26,726 nucleotides of DNA, from assembly GCA_002269645.1 (NCBI GenBank), contig NIVC01001333.1, forward strand, positions 1-26,726, written 5' to 3'. Below are positions 44 to 26,726 of this stretch, piece after piece; the stretch's first letter is position 1; the number at the start of each line of letters is the position of its first letter. The DNA is from Macrostomum lignano. Taxonomy: Eukaryota. The notes under the pieces were generated by a model that was not told the origin of the DNA, did not search any database, and saw only the letters and a program-made list of their open reading frames with translations. A program made the position numbers and the translations under genes.

Positions 44-705
44 TTACATTGACATGGTTATAGAGCTCCGGGCATTGTTGGCCCTCGAAGAAGTTCGGGT
101 CTTCAGGTCGTCCTCATTATTTAACTTTTTGCCGGCTGAGGGCGGCAAACAGGTGATAATCGGTGGGTGCTGTACGGTGGGAAAGAATCTTCCAGCCCAA
201 CTCGAGCAGCTTCTGACGGGTCGACTGTGCCTTGTGCGCAGGTGCGTTGTCGTGCAGCAATATGACCCGGCGACGTTCAGGCGCACCTCAGCCAGCTTCT
301 GATGCAGGCGCTCAAGCTGCTCCTGGTGGAAAGTGGCATTGATGCTAATGTTCTTCAACAGCAGCTCCCACGTTATGATTCCTTTCGTGTCCCAGAATAC
401 TGAAAGCATGACCTTCTTGGGGTGCAGCTCAGCCTTGGTCTCTCACTCTGGCTTTGCATCGGAATCAACCTGTTAATGGAGGTCAGCTGGTGGAGCACCC
501 AGCATCCCCAGCTTTGGCTTCTTGTTCAGACGGTCAAGGTGGTCAGCAACAGTGGAATGATGCACAGCCAGCTGCGCGGCCAGCTCACCCGTGGTCTGCC
601 GGGTGTCCCTTTCAAGCAGCAGCTCAAATGCACCGCCGTCCAGCTCTGCGGCCAGCCACTGCGTGGCTTGTCTTCGAGGCCCTCCTCCCCATCTTCGATC
701 TTTTA
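44..705 (-). mobile_element. Decayed mariner (Tc1/mariner) transposase remnant, internally deleted and frameshifted
   Basis: Minus-strand frames give LEDKPRSG, TRQTTGELAAQLAVHHSTVADHL, WVLHQL (484-501, the WVPHEL motif), KAELHPKKVMLSVFWD, LLHDNAPAH (HDNA at 243-254) and a truncated H..APTDYHLF. The segment carrying the first catalytic Asp is deleted between WVLHQL and KAELHPKK. Confidence 0.93.
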
Positions 706-3647: not shown

Positions 3648-4871
3648 TCACAGAAGCAGCATCTCGAACTCCTTCATCGAATAGTAGTAGCCAAATGGAT
3701 ATCTCCAGCAGACGCTCTTGGCATAGACAGAAGTATTGAGAGCAGTGGGCGAATAAAAGTAAAGTCCGTTCGGGTTGGTGCAGTGGCACGAACCGTACCA
3801 CCAGCCTCCCTTGAACGAGGCGCTGCAGCTCCCTGAATAAATGTCGTTGTCCGAATCAAAGGTGCTGAACTTCATGCCGTTGCAGATAGCCATGCAGTCT
3901 CCGAGTCCTGAACTGCCGCTGAAGCCGCTGATGTTGGCTTTAAACTTGCTGTCCTCGCTGTCCACAGAGAAGGAGCTGTAGTTCGCCCAGTACTCCGTGT
4001 CGTTCCACAGCCTCATCCGAATGAGCAGCGGCCGACCGGAAGGCCACGTGAGGGAGTTGAGGCTTCTCAGACCTGTTAATTGAGCAAGCGCAACTGTGAC
4101 ATACGGTACGGTACACACGGTAAACACTGTATATGCATACTACGATACACACTGAGTCGCCTGCATGCGGAAATTGCAGCCTCACCGATCCAGTGGTTGC
4201 TGTGCGGCCCCGGACCGAAGCCGGCTGCGTATTCGGCCCAGCTGCGATCGAAGCTGGTCGAGTCGTCGACTCGGCGCTGAACGCTGATGAGGCAGCCGCT
4301 GAGCGACGTCACAAACACCTGCAACATCGGGTGGGGGTCGCAGTTAGTAGCTGGCCATCTCACAGCACACGGACAAAGGTTACACAGAGAACTGCAATGG
4401 TCAGTCACCCTGGTGCAGCACGGAGACGCCTCAGTCGGCGGCATCAGGCGGCGACACACCGCGCCACTCCGGCTGGCTGAAGTGCAGCGATGCGAGATGG
4501 GGATGGGATTAGAATGAAGCCAGTGCATGCATCAGTGTTTGGCGAGATCGGGATGAAGATTACGACGGGGATGAATGAAATCAGTGCGTGCAACTGCGGT
4601 TGGCGTGCAACTCACCCAGAATGCACTGCGACCGTCCCACACCGAGGCCTTCGATGAAGACCAGAAACTGGTCAGGGAGCAGCCTCTTGGCGGCAAGTAC
4701 CGCGCACTGCAGCTCGCCACGGACACGAGTTTCTTCCGCAATGTGGAACTGGTGAACCCGATCGCCAGACCAGCTGCTGCTGTGAACTTCGTACAGCACT
4801 TCGAGCGGCTCTGCAGTGGCCAAGGAAATCTTGAGAAGCAGATGCAGCAAAGAAATGAATAAAGACATCAT
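3648..4871 (-). CDS. Secreted fibrinogen-related protein (FReD/FBG domain), 293 aa, 4 exons: 4871-4616, 4476-4409, 4318-4186, 4072-3648
   Basis: Hydrophobic signal peptide MMSLFISLLHLLLKISLATA. FBG motifs QRRVDDSTSFDRSWAEYAAGFG, HWIGL, KFSTFDSDND and CSASFKGGWWYGSCHCTNPNG. All three introns are GT-AG with compatible phases (1,0,1), and the exons total 882 nt. Confidence 0.9.
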
Positions 4872-5457
4872 TGCAGAGTCCGGAATGCAGAAATTTGCGG
4901 ACTGGAAAGCGGCTGCTTGTTTTCACTGTCATGCTGACGATTGCGTTCCCATTATTTAAGTTACAGCAGCCTCCAATGCAATACTGTCGGAAAACAATTG
5001 AAGGCCATTCTTTGTCTTGACAATGTCTTGTAGCTCTGGGTTGGCTGGTTCTATAGTCATGAAATTTCCATGCAGTGAATGCCCAATTAGCGTGGCTGAA
5101 AAGCTGAATTCAAGCCGGCACCCTGGGCCAAAAAATGCGGCGCCGTCAGCCCTAGCAACGTTACAATGCTGAAGACTCATTGGCAAGCGGGACAGTGGAA
5201 GGCTGCAAGTCCTGGGCAGATATGAAAACAGTTTTATCGCCTGAAAAATAAAATCTACAGAATTCTGCGCAGATGCCAGTGAAGCCGCAATTTTTAAGAT
5301 GGGAGAAGCTCCAGGTGCCAATACTGTAATTCCCAGCAAAAAGGTTCATTGTTAGCCAATTATTGGCGCCTATTTCAACACATTTTAAGGCTGCTGTGCG
5401 CAGGGCACCCCAAGGTAAAAATATGCAATTCGTCCGATAAAAAGGGGCGTCACTTGC

Positions 5458-5744
5458 GTCGCCATGGAGTCGTTACAGGTGACACAGGTAAAATACGAGT
5501 AGGGAAGTGACTTGTGTCGCCATGGAGTCGTTACAGGTGACACAGGTAAAATACGAGTAGGGAAGTGACTTGTGTCGCCATGGAGTCGTTACAGGTGACA
5601 CAGGTAAAATACGAGTAGGGAAGTGACTTGTGTCGCCATGGAGTCGTTACAGGTGACACAGGTAAAATACGAGTAGGGAAGTGACTTGTGTCGCCATGGA
5701 GTCGTTACAGGTGACACAGGTAAAATACGAGTAGGGAAGTGACT
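5458..5744. repeat. 58-bp tandem minisatellite, ~5 identical copies
   Basis: Unit GTCGCCATGGAGTCGTTACAGGTGACACAGGTAAAATACGAGTAGGGAAGTGACTTGT starts at 5458, 5516, 5574, 5632 and 5690. Confidence 0.97.
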
Positions 5745-6460: not shown

Positions 6461-7147
6461 TCAACGTTTCCCGCCACTTTTTCTGTCTGCGCCAGCCTTG
6501 GCCCGCACCTCTTTGGCCTGCCGCTGCAGCTTCAGATAAGTTTCCCGGCTCTTGTCGCGCGTGATCGCGCGCAGTCGGTCCTCGGCGCGCAGCTTGTCGA
6601 TGAGGCCGAGCCGGCGCAGGGCGGCCAAGGTGGGCGGAGTCAGCAGGATGGTGCACAGGTCGCGCACTGGGAAGATCAGCTTGTAGAGCACCAGAGCGGC
6701 GGCCAGGGCGCCAACGCTGGGATTGGACAGAGTCTCCATCGCCTGGTCGGGAATGGCCGAGTACAGCCCCTTGGGCAGGTAGCGCCGCAGCAGCTGGGGC
6801 AGGTTGACCTCGCTACTGCTGACGAAGGTGTACACGCAGGTAAACCAGATCACGGAGCCGACAATGTGCACACCCAGCACAACCTTTGTTTGGGTCTTGT
6901 AGGTGCGCCAGATTCTCTGCCAGAATGACTCGGAGCTCTGCTGCTGCTGCTGTTGGGAGCAGAAATATCGTACTGGGCACTGCTGTTGCTTAGATAGTTG
7001 GCATCTGGTTGCTAGGTTACCAAGATGGACTGGCGCAGAGTTGCTGGCTGCCGACATGCCACTGATGAGCTGCGGCAGCGTGCGGCGACAAGTTGCGCCG
7101 CCGAACAGGCGGACTGCACAAAGGGTAAGCGACTGGAATGGAGACAA
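6461..7147 (-). CDS. FAM210A: FAM210A-like (DUF1279) mitochondrial inner-membrane protein; conserved part is uninterrupted, 5' end uncertain (first in-frame ATG at 7057)
   Basis: YKTQTKVVLGVHIVGSVIWFTCVY and LAAALVLYKLIFPVRDLCTILLT match the two conserved FAM210 blocks. A basic, targeting-like N-terminus and a charged helical C-tail, as in FAM210A. The A versus B assignment is tentative. Confidence 0.82.
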   Translation of the reverse strand: MSPFQSLTLCAVRLFGGATCRRTLPQLISGMSAASNSAPVHLGNLATRCQLSKQQQCPVRYFCSQQQQQQSSESFWQRIWRTYKTQTKVVLGVHIVGSVIWFTCVYTFVSSSEVNLPQLLRRYLPKGLYSAIPDQAMETLSNPSVGALAAALVLYKLIFPVRDLCTILLTPPTLAALRRLGLIDKLRAEDRLRAITRDKSRETYLKLQRQAKEVRAKAGADRKSGGKR

Positions 7148-9257
7148 ATCACATGGGCAATCACACAGCCTATGCCATAGACTAGTGCTCTCTTGTGTGA
7201 CAGCAGCTCAGGCTCGATTCCAAGTGCAGTCACATTGACTTGGGGCTAAATTGGAATATCAGCTTGGGTCTGCCTGTGCAATCAATGCCCTTGAGGGCCA
7301 ACCCCACAAGGCACAGTAAAGTGTGCACGCCTACCTCAGTCAGGGGCACTGTACCCTCTTGTGTAAGTGTGCCTATGTAAGTATCTGCAATCTTGTATAC
7401 ATGCTTGGGGAATTTGGTATAATGGGCAGTAATGCCTATTGTGGGCTGTGAAAACAATGATTAGAGTGCACCAGGAAGCACACAGCCCCCTATATCTAAT
7501 AAAACCATAGGCACTGACCAGGTGTAGATTCAGAAAAATTTTAATGGGGCACAGATTACTAAGGTACATGTATATGTGTATCATGTATATGTACATGTAC
7601 ACAATAATGTGTATTTATTGCATTTTTATTTTTAGCCAATATAAATTGTGGCTAAACCAAAGATAAATAATAAAATTGATGACTTCTGACAAAATTGACA
7701 AATTAAGTTGCATGGCCATTATAGATAATTTCAGAGATGATATAAGTAGGTCTAATATATATACATATATGTCATTAGTCTAAAAATTTATAATAGGTAT
7801 TTATGAATAAGTTGGCAAATGTTTATACAAATAATTCTATTGGAATAAGTTGATAAACCATTGGAGCTCTTGTTAGGTCTCAAAAAAGAATTGAAAGTCT
7901 GATTGCTTGGTTTAAGTAGACTGCCAAATCAATATGGTATACTAAAAAAATCCATAGAGTAAAATAAGAATACCATATGTAATATAAATTTATAATATAA
8001 TATAAATAAATCTCACCAGTCTAGATCATAGTAGACATATGCTAGAATAAAAAGCCTAGTTTTTTAATTCTATATTAATACTGATGTATTGCCTACTTGA
8101 ACTTAGGCCAAGCCATTTTTACTGGCAGATCAAGAATTTTAAAGTAGGCCAAAGGCAAAAATAAGCCCCAAATTAGCACAAAATTATAATAAGTGTGACA
8201 TTGTCAATTTAAATAGCCCCACCAAGGGCTGTTTTGACATACAGTACCAATCTTTAATATTACTAGTTCCATTCTCTTACATTTGCTTAAAATAAATAGT
8301 ACCCAAAGAATTTTAATCAGCTGCATACATTTGTAGAACCTGCATATACTACGCGATCAATAATTTCTGTTTCTGTTTTTCTTAGCCAGCCAATAGAAAA
8401 GCCGCACATTAATTATACTAATTTCTCCTCGCGCATTTTCCCTAGCCCATTCCTTATCAATTCTGTCTAGCTGTGCGCTCGGGGTTTAGACCTATTTAGA
8501 CTCTCGTACCCTTGCGATCCTTGCAACGCTTTAGACTTGGAACCCGCCTGGCTTTGCGTTCCCAACTATAGACTCTTGCCACCTTTACTTGTTTACTTGT
8601 CTTTTCTCTCTCCGCCTTGCTCCACCATGGTTCTAGCCACACCTCTACCACTCTTAGCCATGCCACTTCTATTACCTAAGCTATCTAATATGTTGTTGTG
8701 TAGCTGCCAGTGCATCATTGCAAATCCAATTTGTATTTCTGTTGACAATAAACCAAGTCTGTAGCCATCAATCACATTAACATTAACTAACATTATTATT
8801 CTTGAGGCCACCACACTAGTATCGTCACATTAAGCTTTTATATTGAAGTTTAACCATGACAAAAAATAGGGGTGGCCACCCCCTTTAGATTTGCTACTGC
8901 CATTTTTATGTCATCTTAGACCTAAAAATTCTTTGACTCTATAACAAGGTCTATAGACTATACTAAGATTTTTAGTAAGGGGAAATATTCTAGAATTTTT
9001 GGTAGGTAAAAACTGCCACGTTACGACCCGCCTGATCTTTGCACTTGCACACTTTCACTGCACCCAGCCAAAGCAACTTTGAAGCACTTCGCACCTCTTT
9101 TCTCAAGTCTCAACCAATAACTGTACAAGGCTACTTTACTAATTCTAGTGTATTAAGGCAATAACAGCACTTGATTTTGGTAAGTAAATTATGTTTACAT
9201 TGATAAAATCAATCCTCATGAAGAATCTCCCCACCCTAAAACCTCCCATTCCCCATG

Positions 9258-9417
9258 CACGGTGCTACCATAGTCGGAAAATTGCTAAAAAAATTCACCG
9301 GAAAAGTTATTTGTCACAATTGATACTCAAATTAGTAAGGATTCTTTAGAAGCAAAAATAAAAATTGTAGTTGTTTGTTTTAGCTCAAAAAGTGCTATTT
9401 TCAGCTTTTACCATAGA
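9258..9417 (+). repeat. Left terminal inverted repeat (~160 bp)
   Basis: CACGGTGCTACCATAGTCGGAAAATTGCTAAAAAAATTCACCGGAAAAGTTATTTGTCACAAT...TTTTACCATAGA aligns to the reverse complement of 12703-12867. Confidence 0.92.
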
Positions 9418-10102
9418 CGAATTAATAAAAACGTATCACTGTACTGTTTAGAAATCAGTTCGATTGAGTCCAGGATCAAAGGCAAGCATTAAAAAACATG
9501 TTACTGATATTCATCAATGATTGGTTGATGCCTAAAAGCTACACATTTGACTTGGATGGGCCTACCACAAGAGAGTCTTAAGGCCCATTCACACTGCCAT
9601 CAAATGAGACCAAATTTCAAGTGATCACACGACATGTGCATAGTTTTTCATCCCTTTGTACGTAAGTCATGTGAGTTGGTTGCTTGTTTGATGGCGTTGT
9701 GAATGAGCCTTTATACTTGTACTCACCCTGTTTGGATGAGTCACTGGTTCAGATCCACCCAGCCCGCCCAGACCCAAAGCTTTACCCTCAGCCAATCCCT
9801 CCACCATTCTACATACGTAGGTAAGCACTCGTATGCTGTGGCTTGCTCTCTCTCTTCCTGAGCTGTACGTACAAAGTATGATATTGTACATTGGTGTGTG
9901 CTCTTTGCACCAAGCACTCGCTGAACCACCCTCAGTCTTGTAATGCCATCGTGCTCATTTATGTTTTTCATCAATATAAACATCAAACCTCAAACATAAG
10001 GAGGTCCCATTTGAAGAGGTTTTGTTGTCCAACTCTGTCTAAAAGTGTTTCATCCAAACATTTAGTTGCAACGATTGTGCTTGCGTGTACACAGTTTTTG
10101 TC

Positions 10103-12124
10103 ATGCCACTGTCACACGAAGATTGCCTCAATTGGATCTGCATTTTGTGCTTTTCGAAGGCAAAAGAGTTGCAATCCGTTACGCCCTGGATGCTGGCTAT
10201 CATCAATCGGCACAGTGGCTGGCTCTACGATCTGCACAATAATCGCATTCCCAAGGCAATTTGTGGCACGTGCAGATTTGCTCTGCAGCAGCTGGAGAAG
10301 GGCCAACAGGCTGATGTGCCACCGATGTATGACTTCAGGTATGTGCAGCCACTGCCAGTGACCCGATCAGTGGGCCAAGATGAATGCGACTGTAAGATCT
10401 GCAGCACTGCCAGATGCAGAGTCCATCCTCCAGAAGCCAACGTCCCAAAGCGGTCTGTTGAGCGGCCGAGTTTGATGGCGGACGAGGCTACAACGCCCAA
10501 GCCCGAAATGGTCAAGGTCTGCTCCTTCTGCATCAGTCCTATTGGCAGGGGCAAGCCGCACACATGCAACAGACCCACAAGACTGCAGAATGCGCATGCC
10601 CTGTTGCAGGAAGCATCCCCAGAATTCCCAGAGCGGCTCGCCACAACAATTGTGCGGCAGAAACTTATTACTTCAGGCTCCGGAGACACAGCCTCGGGCA
10701 TCACCATGCTGGCATCCAACGCTGGACCCTCAATGAGGCTGGCCGTGAATCCGCCGCCTCGGAGCCAACAGCGGTCTTCACGGCGGATAATATGCATCAT
10801 CTGCAAGGTGAGCTGGGCCTCAGTTCACGCAAAATGGAGGTTGTACTTCGAAATCTTCGGTCTTCGATTGGCGCCTCAGCTGTCCAGAGCAACATCGGCA
10901 GACATTGAGGGAGATGGATCACAAACTGGATGACCTCTTCCAAGCGAAGCAGCTGGCGTTTATCTGAGAAGAGAGGGGAAGGCAGACTCCAGCTGAGCAG
11001 TGGGCCGTTGTCTGCACTGATGTGGTCGAGCTCCTGGGCCGCATGATTGCAAACCGCCGGCTGATGGATGTTGCTTCCACAGTCGTCAGAATTGGAATCG
11101 ATGGTGGAGGTGGGTTCTTGAAGCTCTTGATATCCGTTTTTGACCTGTGCGTGTGTGCTGGTGAGGAGCAGCAGAAGGGGGCTGATCGCCGATTCCTTGA
11201 CACTGGCGTGCATTGGGCCATCATCCTTGGCATCGCTCTCAACATGCAGGAGAACTACAGGAACCTGGAGTGTCTCTGGGAGAGCTGCCGCCTGCAGCTT
11301 CTGTCAGCGAACATCAGCATCGCGTGCGACCTGAAGCTCGCCAACATCCTGCTCGGCTTGATGGCCCACAGCAGCTCGCATCCCTGCACCTGGTGCAACG
11401 TCAATAAAGGGAGCCTTGACAGCTGCGGCGAGCCAAGGACCTTTGGCAGCCTCAGTGAGAAATACCAGGTCTACCTGGCTGCTGGTGGTGAACGCCAACT
11501 AGCTAAGCACTTCGATAATGTCGTCCAGCCCAGCATCTTTTCCGCTGGAGTTGAAGTCCTGGTGTTGCACATTGTCCCTCTGCCGGAGCTGCACCTGCTG
11601 ACCGGTGCGGTCCATGTGCTGTACGAGGGTCTGCATGGTGTGTGGCCCGAGAGCAAAGCTTGGCTTACAGCTTGAAAATGTCCAACGTGACCAGCATCAC
11701 GGTGGCAGCTTCACTGGCAATGCAAGCCGCAAGTTGCTGCGCAACGTGGACCTGCTAGAAGCGATGTGCCCGATGGCAGCGCTGCCGTTTGTTGCCACCC
11801 TTCGAGCGTTGAACTCGGTTGTGGTGTCATGCTTCGGGAGTGAGCTGCGTCCCAATTTCGAGCAGGCGATTCAGGAATTTCGCACCAGTTATGTCGATCT
11901 TGGCATTTCCATCAGTCCAAAAATCCATGCAATTTTCCACCATGTCGGTAACTTCTGCCGCGCCAAGGACAAAACAGGCCTGGGGCCATGGAGCAAACAA
12001 TGCACGGAGTCAATGCACAGAGACTTCCTCCTGCATTGGGAGAGATACAAGGTGGCGAGCACGCATCCTCTTTGCTGAAAGGCTCCTGGCAGCTGTGCGA
12101 TGTTACAACAGTTGCCATTTGTGA
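10103..12124 (+). pseudogene. Chapaev/RAG1-core-like DDE transposase with frameshifts near 10770, 10905, 11673 and 12070 and an in-frame TGA at 10965
   Basis: N-terminal H-x7-CxxC (HEDCLNWICILC), PKAICGTC, CDCKIC and CSFC..GRGKPHTC. Core IGIDGGGGFLK, CDLKLANILLGLMAHSSSHPCTWC, PELHLLTG, FTGNASRKLL, PKIHAIFHHV, GLGPWSKQCTESMH. C-terminus LLAAVRCYNSCHL*. Confidence 0.92.
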
Positions 12125-12702
12125 GCGTTTTGTGGAAAGTGCGAATCCGGAACTGCAACAGTTGAACTGCAAAGCAAGTATTGGACAGTTATGAAGTCAG
12201 AAAATTTAGTAGCATAATTTTTTGACCTACTCAGTTATTGTAGTCAAAGCCTCCAGGAAAATCAACCCGCTAAATGTCCCCTTTGAAGTCTATATATTAA
12301 ATTGCAATTGTAACGATTCTAATTTGAATTGTAAGGTAATACAAAACCTTGTACAATAGGGGTGCTTTCACAAACCCAAAATTTCATAGCATCAAGAACA
12401 TATTCACATGGTTTGGGGTTAGATATTAAGGTGAAAGAATATAAAAAAATAATTTTTATGTTGTAAAATTTGGGGTTTATGAAACGCCGCAGCACCATGC
12501 TGCTTTGAGTTGTTTTGCTTCATGTAAGACAGGATGCTAAGCTTCAAGTAGATTTAAAATGTGCATACAATACAATATTCATGGATTTGCTAAAAAAAAT
12601 TGTGAATTTGTTTTGATTTAAATTGTATTAACTCTTCTTTAATACGTATATTGACAACAATTTGAAAGAATTCAATTACAATGGAATAAATTTCCAATAT
12701 AA

Positions 12703-12867
12703 TCTATGGTAAAAACAGAAAATTGTTTTTTTTAGCTAAAACGAATGAGTACAATTTTAATTTTTTCTTCCATGGAATCCTTAATAACTTGATTGTTGAT
12801 TGTGACAAATAACTTTTCCAGTGAATTTTTTAAGCAATTTTCCACCTATGGTAGGCTTAGCACCGTG
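12703..12867 (-). repeat. Right terminal inverted repeat (165 bp)
   Basis: Reverse complement reads CACGGTGCTAAGCCTACCATAGGTGGAAAATTGCTTAAAAAATTCACTGGAAAAGTTATTTGTCACAAT...TTTTACCATAGA. Confidence 0.92.
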
Positions 12868-13011
12868 CATGCCCTGGTGGTTGGCTTTAAGCTACATATA
12901 ATAGGTTAAAGCTACCAAAAATGGAGCTCAAATTTGAAATCAGCACCATCAAAAACTTTTATAGAGATAGAATTATGATCCTATCAAAATTGCAACTATT
13001 TTATCAACATA

Positions 13012-13483
13012 AACTTCAAGAAGCCCACTGACAGTGCTATACAATAAGGCACTATTATAGGTAGGTTATATAATAACTAATTAATAGTGTAATACACTAT
13101 CTATATTAAATGATGGGAATGAAAATATTTATACAGAAGAAAAGTCTAAGTAAGAGATACACAATAGGGCTTTCCGTAAAAATAGTTATTACATTTTCAC
13201 TATTTTAGTGAGATTTTTCATTTGTAGATATAAATAAAATGATATAAATAAATATTTATATTTGTAGATATAAATAAAATGAAAAATCTCACTAAAATAG
13301 TGAAAATGTAATAACTATTTTTACGGAAAGCCCTATTGTGTATCTCTTACTTAGACTTTTCTTCTGTATAAATATTTTCATTTCATCATTTAATATAGTG
13401 TATTACACTATTAATTAGCTATTATATAACCTACCTATAATAGTGCCTTATTGTATAGCACTGTCAGTGGGCTTCTTGAAGTT
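13012..13483. repeat. Long foldback palindrome: arms 13012-13223 and 13277-13483, 53-bp spacer
   Basis: The arms are reverse complements apart from about 2 substitutions and 2 small indels. Confidence 0.96.
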
Positions 13484-14629
13484 CTTAATTAAGATGATAT
13501 ATTTAAATCATCTAAGCCTTTATTCTTACAATCCTTGTATAAATGAATGAAGCCTAGACTGTTAAAGACTGTTCATCCAGTTAAAAGTGCACTAGACATA
13601 GCGCTTTTAAAACTTTAGGAACTTAGGTGAAATTTAAGTCATTCAACTTGTGTACAACGAAAGCGTTTTTTTAGAATGGAAAGGGACTTTCAAAACAAGC
13701 TTAGTTATCGCATGGTCGAGTGGCCCGACTTGGCCTGGCCATATCACTATTGACGTCAAGTTGTCACCAACACCAAATGTCTGTCACGTCACCGAATTGT
13801 GGGACCCGGCGCCTGACCAGCCAGCCGATCCATTGATAATTCCGTTCTTCGGGAATTCTAATCAGGCACTGATTTTCTTTGAAATTCTAGTTGGTTACAA
13901 CAAAAATTTCTTTACATTGCAGGCTCCATCAGCGAGTGCTTCTGGTTTAGAGGATAGTCGTCAATTCGATGTATTTGTGATTCTTCAAAAGACTTGCAGC
14001 TCTCATGACAACCACGGGAACTTTGACAACTTTTGACCTGGGCTCTATTGGATCTATACATGTAAATGAATACTTTGTCTGTTCTTTGGTTTTGACTCTT
14101 CATGGTTCCGATGAGTTTTTGTGTTCTAGATATTTTGTGAGTGTTTGCTGCAATCACTGCAAATTTATGTGTAAAAATATCAGGCCATACATATTTGAAT
14201 TTACCTTACAGACACTCAAAAAGTTAACTATGTATATGTTGCTACAAAGTAATTTTATTTAACCTCCGATTATCGAGCCCTCAGTAGTTGCAGCTGCACA
14301 TGTATAAATAACGAAACAAAGTCGACGTAAGTATTAATCTCGAGTTAGTAATGGCAGCTTACACCATGAGCGGACATACATGTACGCTGCATGCAGCTAC
14401 TGCGCCAAAGATAGAGTTCGTTAACCACATTATGGTAACAACTAACGATGAGGTACCCTTTAAGCTATAACTTGAAGAATCGTTAAAGCTGCGCAAGTTT
14501 ACATGTTTTGTCGAAAGATCGACTGCGATTAAAATTACGCTACTTAATTGTGTCACTACATGTGCATAGGTGTTGTAACACAACAACAAACGTGTTGAGT
14601 GCGGGCACCACAAGGCGTTAGAATCATGA

Positions 14630-19534: not shown

Positions 19535-20332
19535 GACGGCGAAACACACGACGTGCGACGATGGAGAAAGTTGAGACTTAATTGTGTTTGGAAATTCTTT
19601 GTTGACATGCATATGTACTTCTAATCCACTGCATCACCTACGGGATTTGAGTGCAGATTCCTTAGGACACTACGCCCAGTTAGCTAGATATGTATTCGCC
19701 GAAAGAAGCGTTGGCGACCGCGCTGTATCGATTTTTAAGTTCAGAAAAGTGTCAATTTTGGAAATTCAAATTCGCGCCGAAACGCAGAAAACAAACCCGG
19801 AAAAGCGAGTAGAAAATCAAATTTACATTTTCATTTGTTGTCACCTTAGCTGCTCTGCTATGTCAATGTGACATTTACAGCAAACCAGCAGCCCTCTTGA
19901 TCGATTCTAGAGCCAAGTTTTCTTGGCTTTTCACCTTTATTTCACGTAAAGTTGATCGAATTATTTATTTTTTAGAAGAAATTCATTTGCTCGAATAATC
20001 CCCACCTGAATCCTGCCGGTCAGGTGTTGAATGCGCTGATCTGTGCACTCTGCGCTGATCTAGAAGAATCTTTTTAGGAAAAATGCCTGCACTGAATGCT
20101 CAGAAACCGGATTGGAGAGGTGAGACTAGCAACCCTTTTTACCTTTGCATATCTCAATGGAAATTTAGCTTCAAAATTTTTGATGACTCTATATGTAAAA
20201 GCCCAAAGAACGCAAGCGAGTGAAGTCACAAGCGAAAGTTTTTAATAAAAAAAAAATATGCTTGATTGGATTGTAGCACAATTGCAAGTCTCCTGTGTTT
20301 TACTAAATTTGGTTGTGGTGGTTTATATAGTA

Positions 20333-20692
<360 letters not shown>

Positions 20693-20982
20693 TATTAATT
20701 TCAAATATGAAGAAACGTCAAATACTTTTTAACTTCGGGTCGAAAAGTTCATTATAAAGCATACAAGATTAATTGCAATCTCCAGTGTTTTATTGTAATA
20801 AAATCTATTTGAATATCTCTAGAGACAAAATTAAAACGGACATTGAAGCAGAGTACCTATTTCAATGCAGGCTTTGCTCTGCCTGCAAATAAATTCGCAT
20901 GGCTTCTGATCGAGAGCTCGATGAATATGGAAATGCTTTATTCGTATTGATACTCTGTTACAGTGAAGCTAGTATGGAGCCT

Positions 20983-21103
20983 GGTCACGGTTGGGTGGTC
21001 ACGGTTGGGTGGTCACGGTTGGGTGGTCACGGTTGGGTGGTCACGGTTGGGTGGTCACGGTGGGGTGGTCACGGTGGGGTGGTCACGGTGGGGTGGTCAC
21101 GGT
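20983..21103. repeat. 14-bp G-rich tandem repeat GGTCACGGT(T/G)GGGT, 8 full units plus a partial
   Basis: Units at 20983, 20997 and so on to 21081; the first five carry T, the last three carry G. Confidence 0.95.
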
Positions 21104-21330: not shown

Positions 21331-22095
21331 CTGCAAAGTGTTGCAGGAGTTTGGAAATTCTTTGTTGACATGCATATGTACTTCTAATCCACTGCATCAC
21401 CTACGGGATTTGAGTGCAGATTCCTTAGGACACTACGCCCAGTTAGCTAGATATGTATTCGCCGAAAGAAGCGTTGGCGACCGCGCTGTATCGATTTTTA
21501 AGTTCAGAAAAGTGTCAATTTTGGAAATTCAAATTCGCGCCGAAACGCAGAAAACAAACCCGGAAAAGCGAGTAGAAAATCAAATTTACATTTTCATTTG
21601 TTGTCACCTTAGCTGCTCTGCTATGTCAATGTGACATTTACAGCAAACCAGCAGCCCTCTTGATCGATTCTAGAGCCAAGTTTTCTTGGCTTTTCACCTT
21701 TATTTCACGTAAAGTTGATCGAATTATTTATTTTTTAGAAGAAATTCATTTGCTCGAATAATCCCCACCTGAATCCTGCCGGTCAGGTGTTGAATGCGCT
21801 GATCTGTGCACTCTGCGCTGATCTAGAAGAATCTTTTTAGGAAAAATGCCTGCACTGAATGCTCAGAAACCGGATTGGAGAGGTGAGACTAGCAACCCTT
21901 TTTACCTTTGCATATCTCAATGGAAATTTAGCTTCAAAATTTTTGATGACTCTATATGTAAAAGCCCAAAGAACGCAAGCGAGTGAAGTCACAAGCGAAA
22001 GTTTTTAATAAAAAAAAAATATGCTTGATTGGATTGTAGCACAATTGCAAGTCTCCTGTGTTTTACTAAATTTGGTTGTGGTGGTTTATATAGTA

Positions 22096-22113
22096 TAGTA
22101 GTAGTAGTAGTAA

Positions 22114-22154
<41 letters not shown>

Positions 22155-22155
22155 A

Positions 22156-22203
<48 letters not shown>

Positions 22204-22235
22204 TAGTAGTAGTAGTGGTAGTTGGTAGTAGTAAA

Positions 22236-22281
<46 letters not shown>

Positions 22282-22282
22282 A

Positions 22283-22324
<42 letters not shown>

Positions 22325-22341
22325 TTGGTAGTAGTAAAAGA

Positions 22342-22377
<36 letters not shown>

Positions 22378-22417
22378 GGTAGTAGTAGTAGTAGTAGTGG
22401 TAGTTGGTAGTAGTAAA

Positions 22418-22457
<40 letters not shown>

Positions 22458-22474
22458 AAAGTAGTAGTAGTAAA

Positions 22475-22506
<32 letters not shown>

Positions 22507-22529
22507 TAGTGGTAGTTGGTAGTAGTAAA

Positions 22530-22625
<96 letters not shown>
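22096..22625. repeat. (TAG)n compound microsatellite, copy B
   Basis: Same structure as 20333-20692 but ~170 bp longer. Confidence 0.98.
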
Positions 22626-22915
22626 TATTAATTTCAAATATGAAGAAACGCCAAATACTTTTTAACTTCGGGTCGAAAAGTTCATTATAAAGCATACAAG
22701 ATTAATTGCAATCTCCAGTGTTTTATTGTAATAAAATCTATTTGAATATCTCTAGAGACAAAATTAAAACGGACATTGAAGCAGAGTACCTATTTCAATG
22801 CAGGCTTTGCTCTGCCTGCAAATAAATTCGCATGGCTTCTGATCGAGAGCTCGATGAATATGGAAATGCTTTATTCGTATTGATACTCTGTTACAGTGAA
22901 GCTAGTATGGAGCCT

Positions 22916-22994
22916 GGTCACGGTTGGGTGGTCACGGTTGGGTGGTCACGGTGGGGTGGTCACGGTGGGGTGGTCACGGTGGGGTGGTCACGGT
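22916..22994. repeat. 14-bp G-rich tandem repeat, 5 full units plus a partial
   Basis: Two T-type and three G-type units. Confidence 0.95.
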
Positions 22995-23074
22995 GGTCGG
23001 TGGGCTGGTCATGGTGGAAGGCCAGAACGCAAATTTGAGCACAGTGAGTCCAGCAGTCGCCAGTGCCAATCAGG

Positions 23075-23641
23075 TCATTGCAGGCCTGGCAGCGGCACAA
23101 TCTGGGCATTGCGCAGGTCCGGAGACCGGACTCCACAGGCCTGGAACAGGGCGTACCCGGTGAACAGGTGCGACACAACCAGGATGCGAAAGTCAGCCTG
23201 CGACTTGTTTTCGGCGAGCTCCTGCAAAGTGTTGCGATGTGTGTCACGCCAGTAACAACAAAGCACAAGTGCAGGAGAATAGCAATCGCTCACCTGCAGC
23301 AGGCGGTTGCGCACCTGGCTGACCCGACTGGCGAAGCTCGCGTCCGACTCGCCCAGCTTCTCGTAGCCCTCGCCAGGCAGCAGGTCGCTGCCTTCGTTCA
23401 GCTGCTCGCGCAACTCCTGGACGGTCTCCAGCCGGTCGTAGGTGATCTCGCTGAGCCGCAGGGTGAGCTGGGCGCGGCGCATCGGCGAGCAGAGCACCAG
23501 GCTGAAGTGGCCGCTGAGCTGCCGCGCCTGGGCCTCGCCAGCTAAGGAGAGCGGCACGTCTGGCGAGTTGTCGCCGCTGGAGTTGAAAGTCGACTGGGCG
23601 TGCCGGCAGAAGTACACCTTAGCTGCCTGCTTGGCGCTCAT
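23075..23641 (-). CDS. Short histidine phosphatase (phosphoglycerate mutase-like, branch 1), 164 aa, exons 23641-23294 and 23221-23075
   Basis: VYFCRHAQSTFN (RHG-type motif), PLSLAGEAQA, LVLCSPMRRAQLT, ELRE, GES..F..RV and ILVVSH. A 72-nt GTGAG...TTTGCAG phase-0 intron. Confidence 0.9.
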   Translation of the reverse strand: MSAKQAAKVYFCRHAQSTFNSSGDNSPDVPLSLAGEAQARQLSGHFSLVLCSPMRRAQLTLRLSEITYDRLETVQELREQLNEGSDLLPGEGYEKLGESDASFASRVSQVRNRLLQVSDCYSPALVLCCYWRDTHRNTLQELAENKSQADFRILVVSHLFTGYALFQACGVRSPDLRNAQIVPLPGLQ

Positions 23642-23768
23642 GCTGTGCAGCAAGTGACGGATCGGTATAGTTGGTCGATGATCGGGAATCGAACCCCAAG
23701 TGAGCGAGCAACTTGAGCGAGAGCTGCTTTGTGGTGCAACAGGGCAAAATAAATTCCCCAAAACTTAC

Positions 23769-24475
23769 GGGGATCGCTGAGATGCCCAAGACTCATGGGG
23801 AATCGCTGCAATGCCCAAGACTCATGGGGAATCGCTGAGATGCCCAAGACTCATGGGGAATCGCTGAGATGCCCAAGACTCATGGGGAATCGCTGCAATG
23901 CCCAAGACTCATGGGGAATCGCTGAGATGCCCAAGACTCATGAGGAATCGCTGAGATGCCCAAGACTCATAGGAAATCGCTAAGATGCCCAAGAATCATG
24001 AGGAATCGCTGAGATGCCCAAGACTCATGGGGAATCGCTGAGATGCCCAAGACTCATAGGAAATCGCTAAGATGCCCAAGAATCATGAGGAATCGCTGAG
24101 ATGCCCAAGACTCATGGGGAATCGCTGAGGTGCCCAAGACTCATGGGAATCGCTGAGATGCCCAAGACTCATGGGGAATCGCTAAGATGCCCAAGACTCA
24201 TGGGGAATCGCTGAGATGCCCAAGACTCATAGGGAATTTCTGAGATGCTTAAGACTCATGGGGAATCGCTGAGATGCCCAAGACGCATGAGGAATCGCTG
24301 AGATGTCCAAGACTCATGGGGAATCGCTGAGATGCCCAAGACTCATGGGGAATCGCTGAGATGCCCAAGACTCATGGGGAATCGCTGAGATGCCCAAGAC
24401 TCATGGGGAATCGCTGAGATGCCCAAGACTCATGGGGAATCGCTGCAATGCCCAAGACTCATGGGGAATCGCTGG
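23769..24475. repeat. 29-bp minisatellite, ~24 copies
   Basis: Unit GGGGAATCGCTGAGATGCCCAAGACTCAT with recurrent variants (CTGCAATG; AGGAAATCGCTAAG..GAATCATGAGG). No unique spacers. Confidence 0.97.
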
Positions 24476-25049: not shown

Positions 25050-25512
25050 AATGGGACAGCGCTCTGGTGTAATGGGACAGCGCTCCGGTATAATGGGACA
25101 GCGCTCTGGTATAATGGGACAGCGCTCTGGTGTAATGGGACAGCGCTCCGGTATAATGGGACAGCGCTCTGGTGTAATGGGACAGCGCTCCGGTATAATG
25201 AGACAGCGCTCTGGTGTAATGGACAGCGCTCCGGTATAATGGGACAGCGCTCTGGTGTAATGGGACAGCGCTCCGGTATAATGGGACAGCGCTCTGGTGT
25301 AATGGGACAGCGCTCTGGTGTAATGGGACAGCGCTCTGGTGTAATGGGACAGCGCTCTGGTGTAATGGGACAGCGCTCCGGTATAATGGGACAGCGCTCT
25401 GGTGTAATGGGACAGCGCTCCGGTATAATGGGACAGCGCTCTGGTGTAATGGGACAGCGCTCCGGTATAATGGGACAGCGCTCTGGTGTAATGGGACAGC
25501 GCTCTGGTGTAA
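25050..25512. repeat. 21-bp minisatellite, ~22 copies
   Basis: Units AATGGGACAGCGCTCTGGTGT and AATGGGACAGCGCTCCGGTAT, mostly alternating. Confidence 0.97.
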
Positions 25513-25598
25513 TCAAGCAGCAATCTCTGTAATCCTCGAGTCATTGGGCAATTCAATAAAATTATGCTAATGCTTGCAACTTCTTGAATATTTGAATA

Positions 25599-26140
25599 TT
25601 AGCTGGCAGGCGAGCTGAAGTCCAGGTTGAACGGGTAGATGACGGCATTGGCGATGTTGCCGATCGGCCTGTCGCAGCCGCACACTCGGAACAACTCTCG
25701 CCCGAAGGCGGCGTGCGACACCAGCAGGACGCTGCGCGGCGCCGCGTCTTCAACGCCAGCACCATTGACTGACAGCAGCGAGCGGAGCCGCTCTCGAACC
25801 ATCTGACAGCGCCGCTCGATGTCGACAAGCGACTCCCGAAGTTCGGCCGGCTCCCGGCCATCTGGTCGGACAGATCGAAGATCCACTCGCGCATCTGCGG
25901 CACAATCTCCAGGCGTTGATAGCGAATGCCGCTGAGGTCGAGAGTTCGGCGAGCCCGACGCATCGGCGAGCAGAGGACGAGGTCGAACTCGCCGGTCAGC
26001 GCCCGCGCCTGCGACTCGCCGCGCTCCGATAGATCAACGTCGACGCTGTTGTCTCCGAAGGCGTTGTGACGCGACTCGGCGTGGCGGCAAAAGTACACGG
26101 CGGACTTTTTAGTGTCCGAGCTCTGCTCATTTCCGGACAT
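25599..26140 (-). pseudogene. Second short histidine phosphatase paralog, intronless, one frameshift near 25866
   Basis: MSGNEQ..VYFCRHAESRHN..DLSERGESQA..LVLCSPMRRARRT..MRE continues in another frame as PDGREPAELRES..RC..VLLVSHAAF..IANA*. ATG to stop spans 542 nt (3n+2). Confidence 0.85.
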
Positions 26141-26726
26141 GTGGCAGATTGCTGGGTGATATTGGGACCGGTTGCTAGGTGATTTCCGGCGGCATGAATT
26201 GCAGTTAATGTTGACTTGAATGTAGCCCAAAGTAATTTGACTTCGGCTTACTTTGAAAAGCTGCCAGCCAATCACAGCTGGCGAACTGTGATTCAGCAGC
26301 TAAGCAACGCGATAGATAGTTTATAATCATTACTATTATATTTCCTTAGCAACGGGTAAAAATGAAAAGGAAGGATAAACATTACTGTGGAATCAAAATT
26401 CTTAGTGATTATGTTTTCACAATTATATTTCTGCAAACAAGACAGGCATAAACAAAGCGCATCTTTTTACTTAAAGCACGCGGATGTGCCACAGTAGGGA
26501 CAAGTATGAAAAATAACTAGAACTGTTGAGGATCTCTGAATAAACGAGGAGCTTCACTGCAAACACGTGGAACCAATCAGGCAACAGTAAATACGAGCCC
26601 CAATCTCGAAATTGAAGCATTTAAAAGCACTGCTTTCGCATGATTAGATTACGGTGAACAGTCTCAAGCTCAGAGGCAGCCATCTTGCCATTTCCGTTGG
26701 CTCTTCTGTCCGGACAGGGTGGTCAC

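Follow-up and report, generated by a model that had tools for sequence, protein, structure and literature searches.

Does the flatworm Macrostomum lignano carry a transposon of the lineages related to the V(D)J recombinase? The question is raised by a stretch of 26,726 nucleotides (contig NIVC01001333.1 of assembly GCA_002269645.1, positions 1 to 26,726 of the forward strand), called the window in the following, in which positions 9258-12867 had been interpreted, from the letters only, as a complete transposon combining a RAG1-like catalytic core, a Cys/His zinc N-terminus and ends resembling recombination signal sequences (RSS). The analysis presented here leads to the answer that the locus is very probably an autonomous DNA transposon of the Chapaev group, old and inactivated but complete in structure. 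Chapaev is filed variously, in the CMC superfamily, in the CMCT clade or in the Transib superfamily in a broad sense. Chapaev has already been related to Transib and RAG1 in print, and the Chapa domain and the zinc motifs which they have in common are published as well (PMC4411706; PMC12730594; 10.64898/2026.01.24.700457). The element is a new, decayed member of a known group.

The element, its ends and its flanks

The element is 3,610 bp long and both of its ends are formed by terminal inverted repeats (TIRs) of about 160 bp. The two arms, which extend inward to 9417 on the left and to 12703 on the right, are 83% identical over about 153-160 bp and differ by a 6-bp indel immediately after the terminal CACGGTG. 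The outermost 14 nt are perfectly complementary when the CATG found on both flanks is counted in (9254-9267 and 12858-12871). Both TIRs and both copies of CATG are thus where the sequence-only reading had seen them. The parts outside the transposase gene are the following.

9254-9257, no strand: target-site duplication, left copy, CATG; palindromic, its 4-bp length backed by 10 perfect duplications in relatives
9258-9417, plus strand: left TIR, beginning with CACGGTG (heptamer-like, 9258-9264); 83% identity to the right arm
9266-9273, plus strand: outer left copy of the 8-mer TACCATAG; other copies at 9409-9416 and, mirrored, at 12704-12711 and 12846-12853
9287-9295, plus strand: A-rich block AAAAAAATT resembling a nonamer, 22 bp in from the heptamer
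9574-9717, no strand: palindrome of 144 bp within the element's 5' non-coding DNA; each arm has 31 nt, complementarity 84%
12703-12867, minus strand: right TIR, ending with CACCGTG (12861-12867), with 6 extra bp right after the heptamer
12868-12871, no strand: target-site duplication, right copy, CATG

The 8-mer TACCATAG occurs four times in the window (0.65 expected), every time inside the TIRs; each arm holds two copies, 143 bp apart, and it may be a candidate subterminal repeat for transposase binding. The palindrome at 9574-9717 may be a nested miniature inverted-repeat transposable element or a structural hairpin. Outside the transposase gene (685 bp on the 5' side, 578 bp on the 3' side) the element holds no open reading frame with homologues, and no second copy of the element was found within the window.

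A homeologous M. lignano locus, L084 on contig NIVC01000891.1, is about 95% identical at the DNA level up to position 7616 of the window and again from 13489 on. In between (7616-13489) lies an AT-rich block of 5.9 kb with the element in it; L084 has 1.4 kb of unrelated sequence in place of this block (L084 8075-9511). Short inverted matches join the left and the right flank of the element (8995-9014 with 12903-12922, 9135-9155 with 13090-13110, and 9193-9209 with 12998-13014). The absence of the block from the homeologous locus together with these matches suggests that the element was inserted into another repeat.

The transposase gene

The element holds a single coding region on the plus strand, from an ATG at 10103 to a stop codon at 12122-12124, in five collinear segments which were defined by three-frame translation and by tblastn with four homologues. 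All segments and motifs below lie on the plus strand.

10103 to about 10760: segment 1, with the start codon; window frame 2
10115-10117 (H), 10139-10150 (CxxC), 10262-10273 (CxxC), 10385-10402 (CxCxxC): segment 1, Chapa-type zinc ligands
10460-10468: segment 1, degenerate GRP/AT-hook position, reading ERP
10520-10567: segment 1, CxxC..HxC knuckle
about 10760-10775: frameshift 1
about 10762-10899: segment 2, frame 1; aligns to the family block ..IQ..LNLS....LA...R.A.
about 10890-10899: frameshift 2
10896-11672: segment 3, frame 0; in-frame stop TGA at 10965-10967
11100-11102: segment 3, codon of the first catalytic D, in GIDGGGG
11325-11396: segment 3, CDLKLANILLGL-x8-CTWC, with CTWC itself at 11385-11396
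11328-11330: segment 3, codon of the second D, in CDLKL
about 11583-11594: segment 3, PELH
11677-12069: segment 4, after frameshift 3; frame 1
11710-11739: segment 4, FTGNASRKLL
11923-11946: segment 4, IHAIFHHV with H-x4-H (H codons 11926-11928 and 11941-11943)
11989-12009: segment 4, WSKQCTE with the catalytic E (codon 12007-12009)
12071-12124: segment 5, after frameshift 4; frame 2, with the tail ..LLAAVRCYNSCHL followed by the stop at 12122-12124

The short fifth segment is based on the homologues P0006 and P0005, which align to 12071-12121, and on the family C-terminus ..LL.AV..YNS.H. Stitched together the segments give a transposase of 683 amino acids (aa). Exactly four frameshifts and one premature stop interrupt the gene, the same count as had been proposed when the frame was first stitched, and the motifs then pointed out (IDG, CDLKLANILLGL-x8-CTWC, IHAIFHHV, WSKQCTE and FTGNASRKLL, and the N-terminal H-x7-CxxC and P-x3-CxxC patterns) are all present. 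Because of these four frameshifts and the stop the copy can no longer make transposase. The five disabling lesions, together with the 17% difference between the TIR arms, mark the insertion as old.

Relatives and conserved residues

The stitched protein has 88 homologues, many of them full length (640-730 aa) and 32-35% identical. The nearest database protein, on a metagenome contig, is 51% identical, and no exact or near-identical protein was found in the databases. Among named organisms, Hydra vulgaris and the beetles Brassicogethes and Psylliodes have relatives with about 32% identity, and others occur in many metagenomes. Hydra vulgaris has many intact 658-aa copies within one 90% cluster, which shows that the relatives are mobile, multicopy elements. 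A profile search covering 1.84 billion representative proteins gave 9,932 clusters at E<=1e-3, of which 1,596 reach E<=1e-30, and the family is therefore a large one.

In an alignment of 39 sequences D338 (in GIDGGGGF), D414 (in DLKLAN) and C433 and C436 (in PCTWC) are invariant, while PPELH, GN..(R)KLL, H617, H622 and E644 (in SEQ..ES.H) are near-invariant; D338, D414, C433-x2-C436, PELH (502), H617-x4-H622 and E644 are all either invariant or at least 90% conserved. Since the motif residues fall in such columns they are not chance look-alikes.

A Pfam search with the stitched protein returned no significant family, and phmmer with the same protein against the sequences of the PDB gave no significant match to RAG1, RAG1L or Transib, so sequence alone does not classify the transposase. 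Among the 39 family members no match to Transposase_21, the Pfam family of EnSpm/CACTA transposases, or to any other named transposase family was obtained at E<=1. Weak matches to DUF1280, a Pfam family of unknown function, were seen in 8 of the 39 members (best E=1.6e-4; residues 227-350 of the stitched protein); DUF1280 proteins may be transposase-derived.

The core fold compared with RAG1 and Transib

An AlphaFold2 model was built on the family alignment (predicted local distance difference test, pLDDT, 85; predicted template modelling score, pTM, 0.66) and compared with the PDB by Foldseek. All 23 significant matches are either the RAG1 core or HzTransib from Helicoverpa. Ranks 1-18 are RAG1 cores, with E from 1.7e-13 (4WWX) to 9e-11 and template modelling (TM) scores of 0.44-0.56 normalised to the target, and ranks 19-23 are HzTransib, with E from 5e-7 to 1.5e-4; the next match, the hAT transposase Hermes, has E=0.12. 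The best match of the whole model is thus to the RAG1 core (mouse 384-1008; 4WWX, 6CG0), at an identity of about 12-14% in the structural alignment, and the predicted core fold is also that of HzTransib (6PQN/6PQR/6PQX; E=5e-7, TM 0.55 normalised to the target). The RAG1-like catalytic core proposed for the element is borne out by this prediction.

At the level of sequence the family profile was aligned by hhalign to mouse RAG1 389-1008, in a sequence identical to that of the PDB chains (E=5e-4, probability 31%). The alignment, which can be trusted from the second D on but not before it, pairs D414 with D708, C433 with C727, C436 with C730, H617 with H937, H622 with H942, W638 with W956 and E644 with E962. 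It also pairs PELH with DALH and GN..RKLL with GNFARKLM, and thereby upholds the comparison of FTGNASRKLL with RAG1 MNGNFARKLM. The spacings D-x18-C (within D-x18-CxxC), H-x4-H and W-x5-E are the same as in RAG1 and RAG1L, and the motif GN(F/A)(A/S)RKL(M/L) is common to them and the element. D338 would be the equivalent of RAG1 D600, as suggested by the whole-chain fold match and by the context of a strand followed by DG. In a profile search of PDB sequences HzTransib came out on top over the H..H..E block, that is, with its zinc site and E, at a non-significant E=0.25.

The element also differs from RAG1. It has no RAG2 partner gene and no RING/ZDD domain, a nonamer-binding-domain sequence is undetectable in its transposase, and it is a selfish transposon whereas RAG1 is a recombinase.

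The N-terminal zinc domain

The N-terminus reads H5-x7-C13xxC16 ... P50-x3-C54xxC57 ... C95xC97xxC100, followed by C140xxC143 ... H153xC, and H5, C13, C16, C54, C57, C95, C97 and C100 are invariant in 28 sequences. An N-terminal Chapa zinc-finger domain is a feature of Chapaev (PMC4411706). With reference Chapa sequences from Additional file 5 of Kapitonov and Koonin (2015), which were obtained by optical character recognition so that a few residues may be wrong, BLASTP matched residues 5-121 of the window protein to the Chapa domain of Chapaev-2_HM (E=2e-15, 32% identity) and the Hydra homologue P0026 to Chapaev-1_HM (E=1e-17, 37% identity). Outside the group of Chapaev, TransibSU and RAG1 the Chapa domain is absent from transposable elements (Kapitonov and Koonin, 2015).

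The N-terminal zinc domain (NZD) of RAG1 has been solved; it has no solved homologue, the Chapa domains are its only consistent relatives, and the first zinc module (ZFa) of both the NZD and the Chapa domain is ZAD-like (10.64898/2026.01.24.700457). The Pfam family zf-AD matches 12 of 39 members of the present family (best 6.8e-8), and for an AlphaFold2 model of residues 1-160 (pLDDT 84.7) the best fold matches are ZAD domains (E=0.3, TM 0.56 normalised to the target, root-mean-square deviation 2.0 A). Both observations agree with the ZAD-like first module described in that preprint.

The H-x7-CxxC ... P-x3-CxxC pattern had been said to fit a Chapa motif shared with the RAG1 N-terminus. The Chapa part of this stood, by the match to Chapaev-2_HM; direct similarity to the N-terminus of vertebrate RAG1 is undetectable. 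An hmmsearch with the N-terminal profile against PDB sequences, full-length RAG1 included, gave no match, and hhalign against the human NZD gave a probability of 6% and covered only the P-x3-CxxC helix. The RAG1 NZD is not among the Foldseek matches, and the copy of the PDB that was searched does not contain it. The likeness to RAG1 is accordingly that of a zinc domain of the kind tied in the literature to the NZD, and the link runs through the published Chapaev alignments, not through direct similarity to vertebrate RAG1.

Target-site duplications and termini

Target-site duplications (TSDs) were tabulated for 12 related elements, from metagenome and genome contigs, for which both ends are readable; the number is this low because most metagenome contigs with relatives break inside the TIRs, and the right flank of L002 is 3 bp long. 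All 12 start with CAC, apart from one mutated end which reads CAT. The terminus CACGGTG is common to the window, L002, L004 and L085; the full-length transposases among these three relatives are only about 23-36% identical to that of the window. Perfect 4-bp duplications are present in 11 of the 13 readable insertions, that is in the window (CATG) and in 10 relatives; the duplicated sequences are CATG, CACC, TTAT, GACT, CAAC, TGTA, CTAG, TGGT, GAGG, AAAA and GTAA. Ends of the type CAC..GTG with a 4-bp duplication fit Chapaev better than Transib, as had been argued from the window alone.

One of the relatives, at L086 1494-6318, has TIRs of 659 bp that are 99.5% identical and a perfect CAAC duplication. 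Its termini are CACTA-like, CACTATTG, a piggyBac-like gene (DDE_Tnp_1_7) adjoins it, and the element looks recently active.

Classification

The hallmarks of Chapaev are a TSD of 3-4 bp, invariable CAC..GTG termini and the motifs C(2)C, LH and H(4)H (PMC4079192); the element has all of them, and it has the Chapa domain as well. Closest among known systems are Chapaev elements without a RING finger, the Repbase group of Chapaev-1_HM, -2_HM and -5_HM from Hydra and Chapaev-1_AA from Aedes (Kapitonov and Koonin, 2015). With this group the element has in common the Chapa ligands H-x7-CxxC ... P-x3-CxxC ... TRS..CxCxxC, then ..KxCxxC, the CAC..GTG termini with a 4-bp duplication, the DDE triad together with the motifs C(2)C, LH and H(4)H, and one transposase, intronless and about 650-700 aa long. 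It differs in its host phylum, Platyhelminthes, and in that the window copy is a pseudogene; the comparison with the group was made with N-terminal reference fragments only. Taken together the fold match, the Chapa domain and the Chapaev hallmarks support the earlier proposal that the element belongs to the transposon lineages related to the V(D)J recombinase. It is plausible that the family is an undescribed one in M. lignano; no description of Chapaev in Macrostomum was found in the literature searched.

Several points weigh against this classification. The sequence-only links to RAG1 and Transib are weak, as seen from the hmmsearch E of 0.25 and the hhalign probability of 31% given above. 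Sequence alignment failed to place the first catalytic D on RAG1 D600, and a greedy hhalign run toward it put GIDGGGG in the wrong register with zero confidence; of the RAG1 triad and zinc site claimed for the element, the second D, CxxC, HxxxxH, W and E were thus recovered by hhalign, and the identity of D338 with D600 was not confirmed residue by residue. The placement in Chapaev, as proposed here, is one by N-terminal domain, motifs, termini and TSD and not by a phylogeny of the core. A clean 4-bp duplication is wanting in L004 (GGTC/CGTC, one mismatch) and in L023 (AGGT/GGTG, ambiguous). An empty site was not found at the homeologous locus, where the whole block 7616-13489 differs. Finally, the CATG of the window is palindromic and on its own cannot be distinguished from an extension of the TIR; the 4-bp duplications of varied sequence in the relatives decide the matter in favour of a duplication.

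The alternative that survives best, although we regard it as very unlikely, is that the element belongs to another CMC branch, EnSpm/CACTA or Mirage, with which it would have the C(2)C and H(3-4)H motifs in common. These motifs are indeed common to the entire CMCT clade (PMC12730594), EnSpm/CACTA and Mirage have CA..TG termini like the element, L086 has its CACTA-like ends, and the weak DUF1280 matches in 8 of 39 members might be counted in the same direction. The lack of any Transposase_21 or other named transposase match at E<=1 speaks against this, as does the length of the duplication, which is 4 bp here while a 3-bp TSD with CAC..GTG termini is called EnSpm-consistent in the literature. 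The ends of the element also read CACGGTG and not CACTA. EnSpm/CACTA and Mirage also have no Chapa domain, which is restricted to the group of Chapaev, TransibSU and RAG1 (Kapitonov and Koonin, 2015).

A second alternative is that the element is a Transib in the strict sense, or a RAG-like transposon of the ProtoRAG type, and hence a direct relative of the RAG1 ancestor. The Foldseek matches, which are solely to RAG1 and HzTransib, would be expected from this, and so would the CAC-heptamer termini, which Transib has too, and the left end, where the heptamer, 22 bp and AAAAAAATT follow each other as in the Transib TIR consensus. We nevertheless consider it highly improbable. Transib duplications are invariably 5 bp (PMC4840297; PMC1131882), whereas those of the window and of 10 related insertions are 4 bp. 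The element has a Chapa domain with a significant match to Chapaev-2_HM, and Transib proteins have no NZD- or Chapa-like N-terminal domain (10.64898/2026.01.24.700457). Its TIRs, of about 160 bp, are long for a Transib, its transposase has no significant phmmer or hmmsearch match to RAG1, RAG1L or Transib chains, and no RING domain and no RAG2-like second gene are present between the TIRs. The 4-bp duplication and the Chapa domain largely refute a Transib in the strict sense.

That the locus is a host gene domesticated from a transposase and not a transposon relic is extremely unlikely: the coding part has 53-56% GC in AT-rich surroundings and its frame can still be traced from end to end, but it carries four frameshifts and a stop, both TIRs and the target duplication are kept, the whole block is missing from the homeologous locus, and no near-identical database protein exists, the best match being 51%.

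How the intact element may have worked

In its intact form the element coded for one transposase of about 680 aa, in a gene free of introns. At the N-terminus of the protein stands a Chapa-type domain with two zincs, the first module ZAD-like, followed by a basic linker and then by the CxxC..HxC knuckle. The transposase would bind the TIRs of about 160 bp and cut exactly at the 5'-CAC termini, probably by a nick and then a hairpin on the flanking DNA, a chemistry shown for RAG1 and Transib, so that the element is set free; reinsertion with a 4-bp staggered cut would give the 4-bp duplication, CATG in this case. The anatomy, the family membership, the predicted fold, the conservation of the motifs and the length of the duplication come from the analysis itself; the hairpin chemistry, the DNA bound by the zinc domains and the order of the steps we infer from the RAG1/Transib-like fold. 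A further point to be set against this reading is that no biochemically characterised Chapaev transposase was found in the literature, and the hairpin would be an extrapolation from RAG1 and Transib.

RSS-like ends

The ends of the element had also been called RSS-like. This holds for the heptamer. In the left arm CACGGTG is followed after 22 bp by the A-rich block AAAAAAATT, seven A and two T, a layout of heptamer, 22/23 bp and A-rich nonamer which is close to the Transib consensus. The right arm has the same blocks with a spacer of 28 bp. An asymmetry of the 12/23 type was considered and ruled out: the arms differ by a 6-bp indel (22 against 28 bp), and in the relatives the two ends are alike.

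RAG1 contacts the nonamer with its GGRPR motif. The TIR consensus of Transib is CACAATG-N23-AAAAAAATC (PMC1131882), and comparable bipartite ends, with a CAC heptamer, 22-23 bp and an A-rich 9-mer, are found at these places.

window 9258-9295: bipartite end
L002 174-212: bipartite end
L024 134-172: bipartite end
L052 4331-4368: bipartite end, further member
L070 6604-6641: bipartite end, further member

Runs of six or more A that begin at positions 29-32 are present in 4 of 12 families (the window and three relatives that look unrelated, L002, L024 and L052/L070), with about 0.01 expected per family by chance from the measured background. The identical 9-mer AAAAAAATT stands at the same position in L052/L070 and at position 13 in L023. 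The A-run occurs in all four of the families which have a GRP-type, AT-hook-like linker after the Chapa domain (the motif being ERP in the decayed copy of the window and GHP in L052/L070) and in none of the six without it, in what is a small sample.

It is conceivable, although on balance unlikely, that this Chapaev clade keeps an RSS23/Transib-like end whose A-tract is perhaps read by the GRP motif, as in RAG1. If this were true, the signal of heptamer, spacer and nonamer would be older than the divergence of Chapaev, Transib and RAG, and so would the way in which it is recognised. The co-occurrence of A-run and GRP could be explained by shared ancestry of the four families, with no functional link, and since these may be a single clade the association is to be taken as a lead and not as a result. 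The possible RSS23-like ends in a subset of Chapaev are the sole part of the present findings of possible interest for RAG evolution.

Other features of the window

The rest of the window holds the following.

44-409, minus strand: mariner-type transposase fragment (Pfam Transposase_1, E=4e-12)
3648-4127, minus strand: exon with a fibrinogen C-terminal domain (Pfam Fibrinogen_C, E=6e-30)
5452-5744: 58-bp repeat, 5 copies; the homeologous locus aligns as a single unit
6461-7147, minus strand: FAM210-like gene, 98% identical to M. lignano BOX15_Mlig024466g1
20328-20692 and 22091-22625: two long TAG microsatellites
20982-21103 and 22915-22996: two 14-bp arrays, TGGTCACGGTKGGG
23075-23761 and 25562-26275, minus strand: two tandem paralogous histidine-phosphatase (His_Phos_1) genes
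23757-24474 (29 bp, 25 copies) and 25050-25513 (21 bp, 22 copies): tandem arrays adjoining the His_Phos_1 genes

Significance

For the annotation of the M. lignano genome the element is an ordinary dead DNA transposon, to be masked. For the Chapaev group it adds a flatworm representative, together with a full-length, high-confidence prediction of the structure of a Chapaev transposase, to which RAG1 is the closest among solved proteins. It gives independent support to two published views, that a single ancestral core underlies Chapaev, Transib and RAG1, and that transposons have in the Chapa domain their counterpart of the RAG1 NZD.

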